Shown piece by piece: positions 23,985 through 35,062 of a DNA stretch of 64,000 nt (its first letter is position 1; each line of letters opens with the position of its first letter). A program made the translations under genes and the position numbers. The notes under the pieces are model-generated. The model did no database searches, was not told the origin of the DNA, and saw only the letters and a program-made list of their open reading frames with translations. The DNA lies in sequence record NC_061444.1; one strand, 5' to 3'.

Positions 23985-24375
23985 CGGCGCGTCTGACGAT
24001 GAAGTTCGTAAGTATTACGAGCAGATTCACAAGGACGCAGAAGCAATCATGCAGCAGGTGTGGGCGCTTCGTGGTTGGACTATTCGCTGGGAGTGGCACA
24101 ACGGCATTTGCGATGACTGTGAATTTATTTTCGATGAAACAGGCAAATGCCGTGGCACTAAGTCTGATGCCATACCTCAGCAGGTGGGGATAGCTGACCG
24201 CATCGACGCGCTAAAGCTGTCTGTTTCGCACACCAAGAAATCTGTAAAGATAACTAACAAACATGCTGAAAAGCCAGTTGAAGGAAAAGGCCGTAATGTG
24301 CGCCTTGCTTATCTCGACTGGTTGCTCAGTGTTGAAAAGCAGAAAGCTGAGGAGAGAAAGTGCGCTGCAACTTAA
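23965..24375 (+). CDS. hypothetical protein
   Basis: ATG 23965 with ggag SD. Confidence 0.6.
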   Translation: MYHQLSDGASDDEVRKYYEQIHKDAEAIMQQVWALRGWTIRWEWHNGICDDCEFIFDETGKCRGTKSDAIPQQVGIADRIDALKLSVSHTKKSVKITNKHAEKPVEGKGRNVRLAYLDWLLSVEKQKAEERKCAAT

Positions 24376-24881
24376 CTGAACTACCAATCAAGCTCGAACA
24401 GGCCGAGTTTATTATGGCAAGCGTCTTTGCGCTCGCTGGTGCTTCTAAATCGAAACGCCGTGCGACTGCTGCGATGCTGGTGCACTTTCACAAAGGCTTC
24501 CCCACTATTATCAGTAGTGGCGTGAACGGTACGATGCCTGGTGAGAGCAACGTCATGGAGAACGCTGACCTGACGCTCTCCCTTGACACTGTTATTCACG
24601 CAGAAGCGAACTGCCTGAATCGCATGGAAGAGTACAACATGTGGTCGGACGATCAGGACATTTTGTTCTGCACCGATTCGCCGTGTCCAAACTGTCTGGC
24701 GTATCTTGAAGCGGAAGGCGTTAAGACGATTGTGTACGCGCGAGAGTATCGCCTGACCGATCATCTGGATGCGTCTGATATCAAGATGTTCTGTCTCGAT
24801 ATGGACAGCGTTATTCAGCGTATGCAACACAGCATCGACCGCAGCAAAGAAGTGATTGCAACAACCCCAGCGTCTAATTAA
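24360..24881 (+). CDS. dCMP deaminase-like zinc deaminase
   Basis: SGVNGT, HAEANC, SPCPNC, IVYAREY. Confidence 0.88.
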   Translation: MRCNLTELPIKLEQAEFIMASVFALAGASKSKRRATAAMLVHFHKGFPTIISSGVNGTMPGESNVMENADLTLSLDTVIHAEANCLNRMEEYNMWSDDQDILFCTDSPCPNCLAYLEAEGVKTIVYAREYRLTDHLDASDIKMFCLDMDSVIQRMQHSIDRSKEVIATTPASN

Positions 24882-25720: not shown

Positions 25721-26209
25721 ATGTCTGATTTTAATAAGTTCAAAGATGGTTTCCTTCGCTCGGTGGGTATCGACCCAAAGCGTCTTGACCTGCCGGAAGA
25801 TCCTGAGGGTGCTGAAATCTTTAACAGCCTGAATGCGCAAGACCAGCGCAAAGTCAAAGTTGGTCTTGCGCTGCTGCATCTGCAAGTTCCTGATGAAGTT
25901 CGTTATGAGTTGCTGACGAACCATCTCGATGAAACCGAGCGTCTGGTATCTACCGCGTTTGAAGATCTGACTGCCTCGCTTGTGAACAAGCTGTCGCAAG
26001 CGGGTGATGCGGAAACCAAATCGACACTCGGTAGTGTTCGTCTGGCTATGCTGATGAACATTCTGGGTTTTGATGACGCTACTTTAACTGGCGTCCTTAA
26101 CGACCCTATTCTCACTCGTCGCGCTAGCCTTGTTGCTGTGACGTGCATGAATGAGATGGGTCAGAAAATCCAACAAATGTACGACGAGAAAAGCAATGAG
26201 CCAACCTGA
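25721..26209 (+). CDS. hypothetical protein
   Basis: ATG 25721 with gaggt SD. Confidence 0.65.
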   Translation: MSDFNKFKDGFLRSVGIDPKRLDLPEDPEGAEIFNSLNAQDQRKVKVGLALLHLQVPDEVRYELLTNHLDETERLVSTAFEDLTASLVNKLSQAGDAETKSTLGSVRLAMLMNILGFDDATLTGVLNDPILTRRASLVAVTCMNEMGQKIQQMYDEKSNEPT

Positions 26210-26354
26210 AAATCCTTTAGCGAAATTCTTCGATGAATCTGCATCTATCCCTGGTCTGGATGAAGCCCAAGAGCGCGTTGAAACAATGCGTGATGGTGGC
26301 GGTGAAGTTGTAGAAGCATCTGATGAATGCGAAGGTGGCGGCTGCAAGATCTAA
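26196..26354 (+). CDS. 52-aa acidic peptide ending in an NrdA-like redox tail
   Basis: Ends SDECEGGGCKI*, last gene before a terminator. Confidence 0.6.
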   Translation: MSQPENPLAKFFDESASIPGLDEAQERVETMRDGGGEVVEASDECEGGGCKI

Positions 26355-26357
26355 CTC

Positions 26358-26380
26358 ATGGGGCCTAGTGCCCCATTTTT
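26358..26380 (+). terminator. intrinsic terminator
   Basis: ATGGGGC-CTAGT-GCCCCAT plus T tract. Confidence 0.8.
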
Positions 26381-26392
26381 GTTTTGGGGAAC

Positions 26393-26925: not shown

Positions 26926-27522
26926 ATGACAACGCGAGCGAAAAACATGCTGGACGAAATACGCATGAAACTTAGTAAGTGCCGACATGAGTACCGCAGA
27001 CAAGAAGCTGCTGATCGTGTGCTCAAGCACGATGCAATACGCGGCGGTCAGGTGTGGACAAACATCAAAAACAATGCGCCGTACCAAGTGTTGTTCCTGA
27101 CTAACCTGTACAACGACGGTCACATTCAGGTTGTGTATTCTCAGCATTGGGCATACATCTACTCCATGCCTGTTGAAGACTTCTTCGAACAGTTCACACA
27201 AAATCTGAACATCGACAACACCTTGGCCAGTGCGCACGATGACCTGATGGCTATGGCGACCAACATGCGTGGGAGCACTCGTTTACGCTTACCGCAAGAA
27301 GGTGAACGCTGGACGCGTGTTGACCGCATACCAGACGGCTTCGATGAAAATCGTATGCCTGTGTACCGCCCGCAGTCTGTTACCGTTGTGGTTGAAGGTA
27401 TCGTCGAGCAAAGTCCTGCGCATCCATTCGTTCTGTTTAAAGAAGGCGGCGAGCGCAAGGTCCTGAACATGTATATGTTCCTAAACTTCTACAGCCCTGA
27501 AGGTGAAAACAATGTTGCTTGA
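26926..27522 (+). CDS. hypothetical protein, DUF1653-like plus PQEGE domain
   Basis: GQVWTNIKNNAPYQV...VVY; LPQEGERW. Confidence 0.6.
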   Translation: MTTRAKNMLDEIRMKLSKCRHEYRRQEAADRVLKHDAIRGGQVWTNIKNNAPYQVLFLTNLYNDGHIQVVYSQHWAYIYSMPVEDFFEQFTQNLNIDNTLASAHDDLMAMATNMRGSTRLRLPQEGERWTRVDRIPDGFDENRMPVYRPQSVTVVVEGIVEQSPAHPFVLFKEGGERKVLNMYMFLNFYSPEGENNVA

Positions 27523-28147
27523 TGCGCTAAAGGCACTGCCGTTGCTTGTACTGTGTTATATCGCGTGGAACTGGTTGATTGCTCGTCGTGACCGTGACCG
27601 TCAACTTATCAAAGCGCAAGAGCATTATGATCGCGGTCACCTTGATCGCGGTAACGTCTGGATTCATTTAAAGACAGGTCGTCCGTATACCGTTCTCGGT
27701 CTGACTAATACTGGCACGTCGAAAGCTGGCTTGGAAATCAACGTCATCTATACGAATGACTTCAAGCAGATCTATAACAGGCCGTTCAGTGAGTTCTGCC
27801 ACAAGTTCACGCACGTTAGTCGCGGTTCTAATGAAGAACACTTCACTTTGACGCTGATGGGTTTGCAGATGGAAGCTAACACTCGTCTTCTTATTCCACA
27901 AGAAGGTGAGATTTGGTTTGAGGGCACCATACACGCGACACCTCCAGAGCTGGTGGAACGTGGCCACGCACCGCAAGTAGTCAGTCAACGCCGCGCACAT
28001 ATCGACATGGTGCTTGGTGTAGGTGAAGCCCACCCAGTAGTCGTGTATACTGTAAATGACAAGCAGACAGCAATGCTGCTCTCGCAGTTCATTTTCATCT
28101 ATCGCAAAGAGGTGTCCTTCGATGGAACAACCAGCTCTTGTGTTTAA
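27512..28147 (+). CDS. hypothetical protein with N-terminal TM, paralogue of 26926
   Basis: GNVWIHLKTGRPYTV...VIY...RPFSEF; IPQEGEIW. Confidence 0.6.
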   Translation: MLLDALKALPLLVLCYIAWNWLIARRDRDRQLIKAQEHYDRGHLDRGNVWIHLKTGRPYTVLGLTNTGTSKAGLEINVIYTNDFKQIYNRPFSEFCHKFTHVSRGSNEEHFTLTLMGLQMEANTRLLIPQEGEIWFEGTIHATPPELVERGHAPQVVSQRRAHIDMVLGVGEAHPVVVYTVNDKQTAMLLSQFIFIYRKEVSFDGTTSSCV

Positions 28148-28807: not shown

Positions 28808-29145
28808 CTACACCAGTAATTCGCTTTGACGAACAGACACGTCAACTGCTGGCAAAGATCTTCGGCATACATAAGCCGTTCTTTGTTGTGCGTCGTGATA
28901 CGATCATCTCAGGTGGTGACTTGGGCTTTCGTGTGTATTTGTCGAATGGCACCAACACTGTTACCGTTCCTCGCGTTAAAGGCCTTGACTTGGGCGACAA
29001 GCTCTATCTCGGTGATGACGAGGAAGTTTATGAGTGGCATCCTCATATAGGCTGCACGTATATGGCCATTGGCGATAATCAGCCAGAAGCACTCGCATTT
29101 GGTCTTCATCCAATCGTTTTTCACAAAGACAGTCGGAACTCTTAA
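28804..29145 (+). CDS. hypothetical protein
   Basis: ATGA-coupled ORF. Confidence 0.6.
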   Translation: MTTPVIRFDEQTRQLLAKIFGIHKPFFVVRRDTIISGGDLGFRVYLSNGTNTVTVPRVKGLDLGDKLYLGDDEEVYEWHPHIGCTYMAIGDNQPEALAFGLHPIVFHKDSRNS

Positions 29146-30248
29146 TGGCAAAGCAAACTCTTGATCTACGCGATCCTAATCAGTACGAACTCTATTCCCT
29201 GCATTGTGTTGACGAGCAATACATCAATCTGGGCAACGCTATTATCTCTCAGGGTACTGATGAGTCAGACCCAGGCCGTACAGAAGATACGTGGCGCACC
29301 ATTATCGGCTGTGGCTTCCAGTTGTCAAACACGCTGATCGCTTTCCCTGCGTTAGTCAGTGCTCGTAAGAACTGGCTGGCAGCAGTCGATGAGATGTGCT
29401 GGATGTCTCGCGGCGAAACGAATATCAGCTCGCTCAATTCCAAAATCTGGAATGAGTGGGCAGATGAAGACGGCGAGTGCGGCCCTATCTACGGTCTGAT
29501 GTGGCGCATGTGGCCTGATATCAAAACGTTCCCGACTATTGAGTCGATGAAAGAGCGTCAGATCAGCGATGCAGAAATCGAGCGCATCTCGAAAGAGATC
29601 AATCGCATGAAAGCTGCCGGGTACACTGAAACGCAAATGGCTGACGGTCGTGTGTGCTACGAAGGTACAGTTGACCAGTTCGCTGATGCGCTGCGTCAGG
29701 TAATGGCCCGCAGTCGTTCTCGTCGTATTCGCGTTCAGGCGTACAACCCGTCCTATCTGCACATGCAGGGTCTGCCTCCGTGCCACACCGAGTTCGAGTT
29801 CAACGTAACCAAGCCGACGCTGTATGAAATCGCTCAGATGGAAGCGCGTCAAATGGCACCGGCCGAAGATTCGTTGCACATCGTTGTGACCATGAGATCG
29901 AACGATGTGCTCTTGGGCAGGCCATTTAACATCATCGGCTACAGCGCCATGCACCAGATGATTGCCAAGTGGGCTGGCTTGAACGTCGGCAGCTTTACGC
30001 TCAACACTACCAACACGCACCTGTACACGCATCACTTTGAAGCGTTTGAAAAGCAGCGTGAGCAGTGGGCAGTTCTCGCAGACAACATTAAGCGCACTGG
30101 CGAACCTGTTGTCTATCCTATGCTGGAAATCAGCGACGACATTCTCGGTCTGACGCCGGAAGAGTTGCTGGACAACGCGAACGCAGAGTGGTTCCAGCTT
30201 CTCGATTACGCACCATCACCAGCGGTCAAAGGACGTGTGACGAAATGA
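29145..30248 (+). CDS. thyA: thymidylate synthase
   Basis: IWNEWAD, GPIYG, SRR, LPPCH, MRSND, GRPFN, HLY. Confidence 0.95.
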   Translation: MAKQTLDLRDPNQYELYSLHCVDEQYINLGNAIISQGTDESDPGRTEDTWRTIIGCGFQLSNTLIAFPALVSARKNWLAAVDEMCWMSRGETNISSLNSKIWNEWADEDGECGPIYGLMWRMWPDIKTFPTIESMKERQISDAEIERISKEINRMKAAGYTETQMADGRVCYEGTVDQFADALRQVMARSRSRRIRVQAYNPSYLHMQGLPPCHTEFEFNVTKPTLYEIAQMEARQMAPAEDSLHIVVTMRSNDVLLGRPFNIIGYSAMHQMIAKWAGLNVGSFTLNTTNTHLYTHHFEAFEKQREQWAVLADNIKRTGEPVVYPMLEISDDILGLTPEELLDNANAEWFQLLDYAPSPAVKGRVTK

Positions 30249-32932: not shown

Positions 32933-35062
32933 ATGATCATCAAGCCGCCAACCATGAAGGAAATCAACAAGCTGGCTAAACCCTGGCGTGGTATGAGTTT
33001 CTTCGCAGGTTGCGGTGGGTCTTCGACCGGTCACAAGATGGCCGGTATCGACATTCTGTTGAGCAACGAGTTTATTGACTCTGCGCGTGAGTCGTATGAA
33101 GCAAACCACCCGACAACCAAAGTGCTGCCTCATGATATCCGTCGCTTAGACCCAAGCAAGCTGTTGCGCTACTGCGGTCTTGCTAAGGGTGAGCTGGATT
33201 TGCTTGATGGTAGTCCTCCGTGCTTTACCGAAGACACAATCATCCACACTGCTGACGGCATGAAGTTCATTTCTGATATGCACGTCAACGATCTGGCAAT
33301 GACGAGCGTTGGTGAATACTTTCCTGTGTACGACACTATGGTTCGTCCGTATGTCGGTACGATGCACAAGATTGAAACGATGCTCGGTAGCAACAAAGCA
33401 ACGCCAGAGCACCCGTTCTTTGTTCGTCGCTCTCAGGCAGACGGTAGCTACTCTGAGCCGTTCTGGTGTGATGCGAAAGACGTGCAAGAAGGTGACTTGC
33501 TCTGTACGCCGCGCACTACCCCTGACATGGGGATTGACGTGTATCAGGCTCAGATTGATCAGTTGCCTAAGTTAGTAGCGGACTGGGTGACTTACCCTGA
33601 GTTCTGGTGGATGATTGGTCACTGGTGTGATCGTGGCACAATCGAAACAGTTAACGGTGTTGACGTCATCTGCTTCGAGTCGCACTCAAGCCTTGAGAAC
33701 GCGATGATCGAGCAGGCGTTTGATGCGCTTAAAATCAGTAGCCTGAATCGTATCGACACGACAACGGCGCAGCGCAAAACATTCCGCACTGTTATCGAAG
33801 CAGAGCTGGTGCAGTTCCTGCGTCGATTCGTCAGTCAGGAGCAGAACAAGTTTTCTCGTCGTCTGCCTGCAATCGTGTTCCATTTGTCAAACGAGTTGAA
33901 GCAACAATTCATTCTCGGTTGTGCGGGGCATGACTACGTGACTGCTATGGGCACAAGCCTTGCTATCACATCTGATAGTCGCCGCTTCCTGATTGAGCTG
34001 AACTACCTGTGTGCGTCTGCTTTCAATCGTCCGCTGTTTGACGGTCTTATCTGGGCAGACGTTAACTTCGGTAGTGCGTTAACGCCGCGTGAGCGTAACA
34101 GTTCACGAGCGCATATCGGCTTCCTGTTCCTGCAGGATGAAGCGCTGTTCATGCACGAGTTCTCCGATGAAGACCCGCATCTCTGGGTTGAAGTGATTGA
34201 GAACCTCGCGTATCAGGCGACCTGTGACGTGTATAACTTCTCTGTGCAGACAGACGAGACATACGTTGCAAATAGCATGGTCGTTCACAACTGCAAAGGC
34301 TTCTCTACTGCTGGTGTGAAAGAAGAAGGCTGGGGCAAAGAAGTTAAATACAGCGACAACAAGTATCAGCAGGTTGATGACCTGTTCGATCAGTATTGCC
34401 GTATGTTGCAAGGCATGGAGCCAAAAGTGTTCACTGCGGAAAACGTCAGTGGCCTAATCAAGGGTACCTCTAAAGGGTACTTTGTCGAAATCATGAAGCA
34501 CTTCGACAGATTAGGTTATTATGTTCGTGCTCCGATGTTGAATGCTTGCTGGCTTGGCGTACCGCAATCGCGTGAGCGTATCATCTTCATGGGTGTGCGT
34601 AAAGACGTTGCCCACGCACTCGGCTATAAGTCTGCTCAGACCGCTGTGCCTGATGTTATCCCGTGCGAGACGCAAGCGTTTCTCGGTGATGCGTTACCGC
34701 ACATCATGCGATACAAAACAACGCAGCGTGACCTGATCAAATATCTGCCTGCCGTTAACGGTCCGATGCCTACGATTACTGCTGCTGATGCGATTGCGTA
34801 TGAGACTGCGCGATTCTCGTCTGCTGGCTTTATCGAAGACAACAAAGGTCATCGCCGTAAGCTGACCATCGACGAACTCAAAGTTATCTCTGGACTGCCG
34901 TCTGACTATAAGCTGATGGGCGAGTTTGAAGAACAATGGGAACGTCTTGGTCGTATCTGTGTGCCAGCAATGACACACGCTGCATCTAAGGCTTTCATCG
35001 AGCACATTCTTCTGCCGTATGCGAAGAAGCGTAAGAAGAAGCCCGGCGATATCTTTAAGTAA
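32933..35062 (+). CDS. C5 cytosine methyltransferase-fold enzyme with intein; candidate cytosine carboxymethyltransferase (CmoX-like)
   Basis: Motif I FAGCGG, IV GSPP/C, VI AENV, VIII QSRERI; motif X reads LGRICVP instead of GNAVP. Confidence 0.85.
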   Translation: MIIKPPTMKEINKLAKPWRGMSFFAGCGGSSTGHKMAGIDILLSNEFIDSARESYEANHPTTKVLPHDIRRLDPSKLLRYCGLAKGELDLLDGSPPCFTEDTIIHTADGMKFISDMHVNDLAMTSVGEYFPVYDTMVRPYVGTMHKIETMLGSNKATPEHPFFVRRSQADGSYSEPFWCDAKDVQEGDLLCTPRTTPDMGIDVYQAQIDQLPKLVADWVTYPEFWWMIGHWCDRGTIETVNGVDVICFESHSSLENAMIEQAFDALKISSLNRIDTTTAQRKTFRTVIEAELVQFLRRFVSQEQNKFSRRLPAIVFHLSNELKQQFILGCAGHDYVTAMGTSLAITSDSRRFLIELNYLCASAFNRPLFDGLIWADVNFGSALTPRERNSSRAHIGFLFLQDEALFMHEFSDEDPHLWVEVIENLAYQATCDVYNFSVQTDETYVANSMVVHNCKGFSTAGVKEEGWGKEVKYSDNKYQQVDDLFDQYCRMLQGMEPKVFTAENVSGLIKGTSKGYFVEIMKHFDRLGYYVRAPMLNACWLGVPQSRERIIFMGVRKDVAHALGYKSAQTAVPDVIPCETQAFLGDALPHIMRYKTTQRDLIKYLPAVNGPMPTITAADAIAYETARFSSAGFIEDNKGHRRKLTIDELKVISGLPSDYKLMGEFEEQWERLGRICVPAMTHAASKAFIEHILLPYAKKRKKKPGDIFK
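33221..34291 (+). mobile_element. 357-aa intein with degenerate LAGLIDADG region
   Basis: Starts CFTEDT, ATPEHPF, ends YNFSV...VHN followed by Cys; removal restores SPPCKGFS. Confidence 0.92.

Follow-up and report, generated by a model that had tools for sequence, protein, structure and literature searches.

The tail cysteines of host NrdA, the alpha subunit of class Ia ribonucleotide reductase (RNR), re-reduce the active-site disulfide at each turnover, and the tail is in turn re-reduced by thioredoxin (Trx) or glutaredoxin (Grx). Among the moving parts of class I RNR, the rate-setter of DNA-precursor supply, this C-terminal tail is the one least understood. In yeasts, the small disordered proteins Sml1 and Spd1 are inhibitors reported to act at the RNR large subunit and to impede tail-dependent regeneration. 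The tails of class I RNR are disordered and carry two cysteines that re-reduce the active site, spaced mostly by two residues and by four in a minority such as E. coli (PMC9669993). In NrdJa/NrdJb, a split class II RNR, the C-terminal part bearing the Cys pair is a separate polypeptide (PMC9669993). Here, we describe gp039, a small gene of Erwinia phage pEa_SNUABM_32 (genus Alexandravirus; 265,891 bp; host Erwinia amylovora, the agent of fire blight), whose product of 52 amino acids (aa) appears from its sequence to be a free-standing copy of the NrdA tail. The window analyzed comprises bases 1-64000 of the phage genome (NC_061444.1), 64,000 nucleotides in all; a 4-kb piece compared with that record was 100% identical and fell at the same coordinates.

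Like the C-terminal redox tail of NrdA (R1 in E. coli), the gp039 peptide is acidic, predicted to be disordered and furnished with two near-terminal cysteines, set in an octapeptide that is identical or near-identical to that of NrdA. It differs in being a protein of its own that is not joined to a catalytic barrel, in having an N-terminal half (acidic motif and helix) without NrdA counterpart, and in being encoded by a phage without any RNR. What gp039 has of NrdA (~760 aa) is the acidic, disordered C-terminal tail and its terminal cysteine pair; with 52 aa and no Pfam family, it has neither the catalytic ten-stranded barrel nor the ATP-cone. Sml1 and Spd1 share small size and intrinsic disorder with gp039, but they are eukaryotic inhibitors and not tail copies, and neither turned up in general Pfam, PDB and protein searches, no search having been aimed at Sml1/Spd1. 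The likeness to NrdJa/NrdJb lies in a Cys-pair part that acts as a separate chain with a catalytic chain (PMC9669993), a partnership that for gp039 is proposed. NrdJb, in contrast, is folded (IscU-like plus zinc-finger) and encoded beside its catalytic chain, whereas gp039 is disordered by prediction and its catalytic partner, if any, belongs to the host.

RESULTS AND DISCUSSION

A stand-alone phage peptide that ends like NrdA

The gene gp039 occupies positions 26196-26354 on the + strand, stop included (coding part 26196-26351; stop codon 26352-26354), as given by its open reading frame (ORF), its translation and the RefSeq coding sequence MPK67_gp039, which is labeled hypothetical protein. 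Its start is backed by an N-terminus conserved in five family members (P0001-P0005), and its translation ends DECEGGGCKI-stop. The composition is strongly acidic, with 13 Asp+Glu against 4 Lys+Arg and a net charge of -9. An AlphaFold2 model from a 49-sequence alignment had a mean predicted local distance difference test score (pLDDT) of 64.5 and a single helix at residues 21-32 (26256-26291, +), in the acidic N-terminal half of the module; the model thus describes a mostly disordered peptide, unstructured outside these residues, and an equivalent helix was modeled at residues 132-144 of a fused relative (P0101). The NrdA-tail copy proper, as defined by sequence comparison, is the terminal octapeptide with the Cys pair, residues 45-52 (26328-26351, +). 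The initial annotation had proposed a 52-aa acidic, flexible ORF ending DECEGGGCKI-stop that mimics the RNR redox tail as a stand-alone protein; ORF, translation, charge and AlphaFold2 model bear out the first part, and the PDB profile, the genomic scan and the conservation of the family cysteines presented below bear out the second. On sequence grounds, the gene is conserved and looks expressed, and its product is a disordered acidic peptide with a dithiol end copying the NrdA tail.

One genome from each of 185,579 bacterial and archaeal species was scanned for Cys-Glu-x-Gly-(Ala/Gly)-Cys-Lys-Ile-stop, written as a degenerate DNA pattern, and at least 120 loci matched. Among the 120 matches listed, 110 were nrdA 3' ends (ORFs of ~761 aa), seven were small stand-alone ORFs and three were other. 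The NrdA ends among these listed matches read CESGACKI in 63 cases, including all three Erwinia species, and CEGGACKI in 40, with a further five, all from Vibrio, reading CEGGGCKI, identical to the end of gp039. With the NrdA of these three other Erwinia species standing in for that of E. amylovora, six of the eight residues of the gp039 octapeptide match. The matched Erwinia ORFs carry the NCBI name class 1a ribonucleoside-diphosphate reductase subunit alpha and align with E. coli R1 over the last 100 residues (E = 6e-57). In two family members from Erwinia phages (P0032 and P0038), the last ten residues are those of Erwinia NrdA.

A 16-member family profile run against 177,635 PDB sequences found ten E. 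coli R1 chains as its only natural matches, with profile positions 42-53 lying on R1 residues 750-761, the last twelve; designed TIM barrels also matched and were rejected as a repeat artefact. A chromosomal family member from Neisseria, discussed below, matched R1 tails and the 25-mer R1 tail peptide 1qfn_B, from what we take to be a complex of that peptide with glutaredoxin 1. Conversely, tblastn of Vibrio NrdA against the whole phage genome returned only gp039, at 54.5% identity over the last 22 residues, and all three NrdA proteins used as queries hit the last 22 codons of gp039 and nothing else. By profile score, the tails of Morganellaceae NrdA came closest (22-26 bits across 25 profile positions, where the motif by itself scores ~15 bits). 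Taken as a comparison of sequences, the resemblance between gp039 and the NrdA tail is far beyond chance, and the peptide end is to be read as a copy of that tail, probably captured from the 3' end of an nrdA gene, with convergence as the alternative.

The N-terminal half of the module was also considered as a mimic of the NrdB C-terminal tail. A profile of this half found no NrdB match among 16,183 ORFs of nrdAB loci, direct inspection gave a loose compositional likeness, and the candidate was rejected. Separately, an NrdA-like ending was seen in Psychrosphaera algicola (L046:3608-3634) within a stop-to-stop ORF of only 23 codons; this is the end of a disrupted nrdA or else one more short tail gene.

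A conserved family in unrelated phages and in Neisseria

When gp039 alone was used as the query, searches of PDB, Pfam, PHROG and NCBIfam gave no significant match, and the NrdA link surfaced only through profiles and the genomic pattern scan, not through single-sequence searches. At the level of the family, tblastn with gp039 found members in 93 phage records and tblastn with the member from Serratia phage PCH45 in 132, and a profile search of 1.84 billion proteins (E <= 0.001) yielded 75 clusters at 50% identity; at 90% identity, the profile search gave 96 clusters. The family profile matched relatives of gp039 at E = 8e-25 to 1e-7, and in every profile match the alignment extended to the C-terminal end of the protein. 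Carriers comprise Alexandravirus; Klebsiella phage Miami and its relatives; Serratia phage PCH45; Salmonella phages SA002 and SPLA10; Erwinia phages Wellington/Kwan and pEa_SNUABM_37/54; Dickeya phages JA11/13/29; and the 52-kb Chaseviridae of the phiEcoM-GJ1 type. The family spans at least six phage lineages, among them jumbo phages lacking RNR and small ones with an orphan beta, plus Neisseria chromosomes.

Across 149 distinct family sequences, a Cys stands at position -3 in all (149/149), a second Cys lies four residues upstream of it in 109, three in 14 and two in 26, and the terminal residue is Ile in 146; Lys at position -2 is less constant (96/149), and net charge over the last 50 residues has a median of -10. 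gp039 has all four family features: Cys -3 with a second Cys 2-4 residues before it, a terminal Ile and an acidic module at the extreme C-terminus. The terminal CxxxxC pattern proposed in the initial annotation therefore held for the cysteine pair, which is conserved in 149/149, and proved too narrow in its fixed four-residue spacing, which can be two, three or four. The codons for the invariant Cys, Cys and Ile differ among phage homologues, which indicates that selection acts on the protein. Between pEa_SNUABM_32 and pEa_SNUABM_1 (25721-26354 versus L015:2526-3147), the upstream gene product gp038 is 84.6% identical and the peptide only ~41%, its first residues and tail being kept and its middle replaced. 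Most members stand alone, with 120 of the 149 sequences at most 70 aa long and without a fused domain.

The family is already present in PHROGs 10239, 24014, 14561 and 38753, all labeled 'unknown function', among which it is split four ways. These are short profiles that match the C-terminus of family members end-to-end, but gp039 itself reaches only E = 0.011-0.1 against them, and the clusters are unannotated and carry no RNR link. Our literature searches did not find a description of the peptide family, and the RNR link is new information for the hundreds of genomes that annotate it as hypothetical protein.

Six of the seven small-ORF pattern matches among those listed came from Neisseria assemblies. 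The 42-aa Neisseria member was found on >1000 contigs, and lies ~70 nucleotides (nt) upstream of iscU in N. meningitidis (contig JVVZ01000348.1; L097:5063-5191), N. flavescens, N. oralis and two further Neisseria assemblies (the other loci being L020, L030, L100 and L114); in every Neisseria locus covering the upstream region, it is preceded by iscR and iscS. The last 12 residues of this member are one position off the end of the RNR alpha chain 7mdi_A, presumably the N. gonorrhoeae enzyme. One Neisseria metagenome-assembled genome (MAG) has a copy of greater divergence, which sits between valS and an aldehyde dehydrogenase gene.

RNR content of the carrier phages

RNR content was surveyed in full for three carriers, pEa_SNUABM_32, Wellington and GJ1. 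For pEa_SNUABM_32, no RNR, thioredoxin or glutaredoxin is annotated among 336 features, Pfam searches of the 20 largest unnamed ORFs found no RNR, and tblastn with Erwinia, Escherichia and Vibrio NrdA and NrdB as well as GJ1 NrdB found no RNR gene. The initial annotation had suggested checking whether a phage nrdA elsewhere in the genome lacks its tail; with neither nrdA nor nrdB present, there is no such gene, and a target related to RNR has to be sought in the host, in its enzyme or its redoxins. Wellington, an unrelated carrier of 245 kb with a multisubunit RNA polymerase, likewise has no class I RNR.

Every GJ1-type carrier encodes a host-like class Ia beta subunit (46 records at >=90% identity), which along its full length shares 78-80% identity with enterobacterial NrdB. 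In phiEcoM-GJ1 itself (NC_010106.1), no NrdA was found, making its nrdB (L137:31858-32976) an orphan in a genome that also holds a tail peptide ORF (L011:6001-6141). These phages thus appear to carry two accessories for host alpha, one that generates the radical and one that copies the alpha tail. The orphan NrdB resembles the peptide in being a phage-encoded accessory aimed at host NrdA in the same genomes, but it is a full-length enzyme subunit and not a mimic, and it is absent from pEa_SNUABM_32. The GJ1 tail peptide ORF is unannotated in RefSeq and begins ~25 nt past a tRNA-Arg gene. A GJ1-type nrdB at 98.7% identity was also seen in PP952070.1, named Staphylococcus phage Pel53 (S. hyicus; 53.7 kb), a host label that looks doubtful for an enterobacterial phage group.

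A proposed redox tail acting in trans

We consider it fairly likely that the peptide family acts somewhere on the relay between RNR and its redoxins. Besides the tail identity, the absence of RNR from pEa_SNUABM_32 and Wellington, the NrdB of GJ1-type carriers and the nearby dCMP deaminase and thymidylate synthase genes, it was counted toward an RNR-tail function that the conserved Cys pair and terminal Ile are the feature that the redox chemistry needs, that the spread of Cys spacings in the family parallels that of class I RNR tails (PMC9669993), and that split NrdJa/NrdJb provides a precedent for a tail acting from a separate chain (PMC9669993). More tentatively, at somewhat less than even odds, though ahead of any single alternative considered here, we propose from the sequence comparisons that gp039 is a trans-acting NrdA tail that supports the host Trx/Grx-to-NrdA relay and does not block it. 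gp039 would be reduced by host Trx/Grx, its end matching their natural substrate, and reduced gp039 would pass electrons to host NrdA in trans, exchanging disulfides with the NrdA active site provided that it gains access to it; a fixed pool of host enzyme would in this way gain extra tails during phage DNA synthesis. We infer the direction of this effect, support over inhibition, and favor it because RNR-less phages need host deoxynucleoside triphosphate (dNTP) synthesis and because the GJ1 lineage invests in a beta subunit: phages that pay for beta would want more host-alpha activity.

A natural, free-standing and conserved tail would demonstrate that the enzyme can be furnished with its tail from elsewhere, and would offer a compact handle on how Trx and Grx recognize the RNR tail. 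It would also add a type of host-takeover factor to phage nucleotide metabolism, in which a host enzyme is controlled by copying 10-20 of its residues, at a lower cost than that of nrdAB and possibly with less visibility to defences that sense phage RNR. In its widest form, which taken as a whole we regard as rather improbable, the proposal would make free RNR tails an unrecognized class of diffusible redox shuttle, with RNR-less phages (sometimes with an orphan beta) seizing host alpha to drive dNTP synthesis, and with the Neisseria copy under isc-operon control coupling RNR re-reduction to iron-sulfur (Fe-S) status.

Several observations weigh against a supporting tail. Host NrdA has its own tail, and a benefit from extra tails is an assumption. 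Similarity to NrdA is weak beyond the last 8-12 residues; the segment upstream of the motif scores 2-6 bits, which 0-30 of 200 shuffles also attain, and the acidic N-terminal half with its helix is conserved, unexplained and unlike the NrdB tail. Strict matching between phage tail and host tail was not found, as some Erwinia phages match exactly and others differ, and ends vary within E. amylovora phages, two-residue Cys spacing included. In Neisseria, the 42-aa member lies between iscS and iscU, away from the nrd genes, and this copy in the isc operon therefore leaves room for roles other than RNR. Lastly, 19 of the 149 distinct sequences exceed 100 aa and have the module fused to unrelated N-terminal domains, and the occurrence of at least four N-terminal domain families that carry it equally fits a general-purpose tag.

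The fused forms lend weight to an alternative that we judge unlikely but worth keeping in view, in which the module is a portable redox or docking arm for the fused or neighboring protein (here gp038), recruiting Trx/Grx or tethering its partner to a hub, and in which the likeness to NrdA would reflect common redoxins and not action on RNR. The module is at the extreme C-terminus whether alone or fused, hhalign found no relation among the fused N-terminal domains, nor between these and gp038 or other upstream genes, and the N-terminal domain of the SA002 protein is a separate gene upstream of the peptide in pEa_SNUABM_37, forming a fusion/fission pair; in four lineages, moreover, the start of the peptide gene overlaps the stop of the gene upstream. 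Yet those upstream genes differ by lineage and none has a recognizable enzyme fold, the 120 short members have no fused domain to serve, and an arm of this kind leaves the orphan nrdB and the dNTP-gene neighborhood unexplained. Carrying a similar, low probability is a decoy or inhibitor, a free tail that competes for Trx/Grx or fills the NrdA tail site, throttling RNR or diverting redoxins much as small disordered inhibitors of RNR act. This reading draws on the same evidence of NrdA-tail mimicry and on a small, acidic, disordered peptide, and a substrate look-alike in excess is a classic competitive design. Damping RNR could even help the phage, given that defence systems sense the dNTP rise caused by phage NrdAB (bioRxiv 10.64898/2026.10.27.754916). 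It sits poorly, however, with the dependence of a 266-kb phage without RNR on host dNTP synthesis, with the functional-looking NrdB of GJ1-type carriers, which points to raising RNR activity, and with the position of the peptide gene among dTMP-synthesis genes.

The Neisseria copies bear on two further readings. The acidic stretch and Cys pair might bind iron, an Fe-S cluster or persulfide, so that the family would serve Fe-S supply or sulfur relay, for example to the diiron subunit or to radical SAM enzymes. We hold this to be improbable, although the 42-aa member lies close to iscU in at least five Neisseria species or MAGs, class II RNR C-termini pair the Cys pair with an IscU-like domain (PMC9669993), and pEa_SNUABM_32 encodes a radical SAM protein; one Neisseria MAG has its copy elsewhere, no phage copy is near Fe-S genes, and the near-identity of the Neisseria end to 7mdi_A again points to RNR. 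A modified-peptide precursor resembling a lanthipeptide, with an acidic leader and a Ser/Cys core, would account for the UniRef label 'FxLD family lantipeptide' on two Neisseria members and for the Ser/Thr found shortly before the first Cys in 100 of 149 sequences, but such a residue is missing in a third of members; no NCBIfam lanthipeptide model matched even at E = 10, and no modifying-enzyme genes (dehydratase, cyclase) were seen near the peptide gene in any locus read, on which grounds the label was rejected and the reading is very improbable. Least probable of all is a vestige without function, left by the 3' end of a phage nrdA gene that has been lost. The tail does probably derive from an nrdA 3' end, but gp039 begins at a start of its own, its N-terminal half is conserved and bears no relation to NrdA, the family occurs in many unrelated phage lineages and in Neisseria, codon variation at the invariant residues shows purifying selection, and a terminator follows the gene.

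The fused N-terminal domains themselves gave little indication of function. Pfam made one assignment only, a circularly permuted YpsA SLOG domain in P0129, and PHROGs gave no further information. For the SA002-type domain, AlphaFold2 was confident over residues 1-100, Foldseek retrieved uncharacterized jumbo-phage proteins only and nothing in PDB at E <= 0.001, and a homologue search yielded only 3 proteins.

Genomic context of gp039

gp039 closes a block of genes on the + strand. The gene upstream, gp038 (25721-26209, +; RefSeq), encodes a 162-aa protein without any family match in Pfam or PHROG searches, and its stop overlaps the start of gp039 by 14 nt, an arrangement that makes translational coupling of the two genes probable. 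The same 14-nt overlap occurs in pEa_SNUABM_1, and overlaps of 8 nt occur in JA29 and pEa_SNUABM_54. A short A run lies at the overlap (26183-26209), where gp039 is in the +1 frame relative to gp038; it is conceivable that slippage there could yield a minor gp038-tail fusion, mirroring the natural fused relatives. Downstream, a 7-bp, G+C-rich hairpin (26358-26376) followed by a T-run makes up a terminator-like element (26358-26386, +), identified from the sequence and from homologues, that would mark the end of the transcription unit. Its folding energy is by itself unexceptional (z = -0.9), and a hairpin directly follows the TAA stop in 8 of 11 phage homologues of gp039, from which it appears that the gene typically closes a transcription unit.

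Two genes of dTMP synthesis lie close by. The dCMP deaminase gene (24360-24881, +; RefSeq) is 1.3 kb upstream of gp039, in the same + strand block ahead of the terminator, and a gene for a 367-aa thymidylate synthase homologue, gp046 (29145-30248, +; Pfam PF00303, E = 2.2e-55), is 2.8 kb downstream. In these respects the initial annotation, which had placed gp039 before a terminator, between flanking ORFs that are not RNR-like and near dCMP deaminase and thyA, agrees with what we found: the hairpin and T-run are present and recur in the homologues, neither gp038 nor gp040 has an RNR-like Pfam or PHROG match, and both nucleotide genes are in place.

A similar neighborhood recurs in other carriers, with dCMP deaminase and/or thymidylate synthase within ~3 kb of the peptide gene in Alexandravirus, JA29, Wellington and GJ1. 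In JA29, CMP deaminase is 1 kb and thymidylate synthase 2.8 kb downstream; in GJ1, thymidylate synthase is 1.6 kb downstream; and in Wellington, thymidylate synthase is two genes upstream and a MazG pyrophosphohydrolase two genes downstream. Miami has an HD-type phosphohydrolase two genes upstream, and in PCH45, SA002, pEa_SNUABM_37 and pEa_SNUABM_54 the neighbors are unnamed or structural.

Some observations concern other genes of these phages. gp046 covers the PF00303 model end to end and is ~100 residues longer than it, and may be a variant enzyme, for example a hydroxymethylase-type relative, instead of plain ThyA. Directly downstream of the gp039 region, gp041 and gp042 (26926-28147, +) each match phrog_4767 at its start and resemble tandem paralogues. 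Outside the window, gp276 (NC_061444.1 221672-223081; L008:35672-37081), hypothetical by annotation, encodes a radical SAM protein that includes a 4Fe-4S cluster domain, and Wellington has two radical SAM genes. Within the window, gp051 (32933-35062, +), likewise labeled hypothetical, encodes a C-5 cytosine DNA methylase (Pfam E = 6e-38) that is split by an intein splicing domain and a Hint domain.

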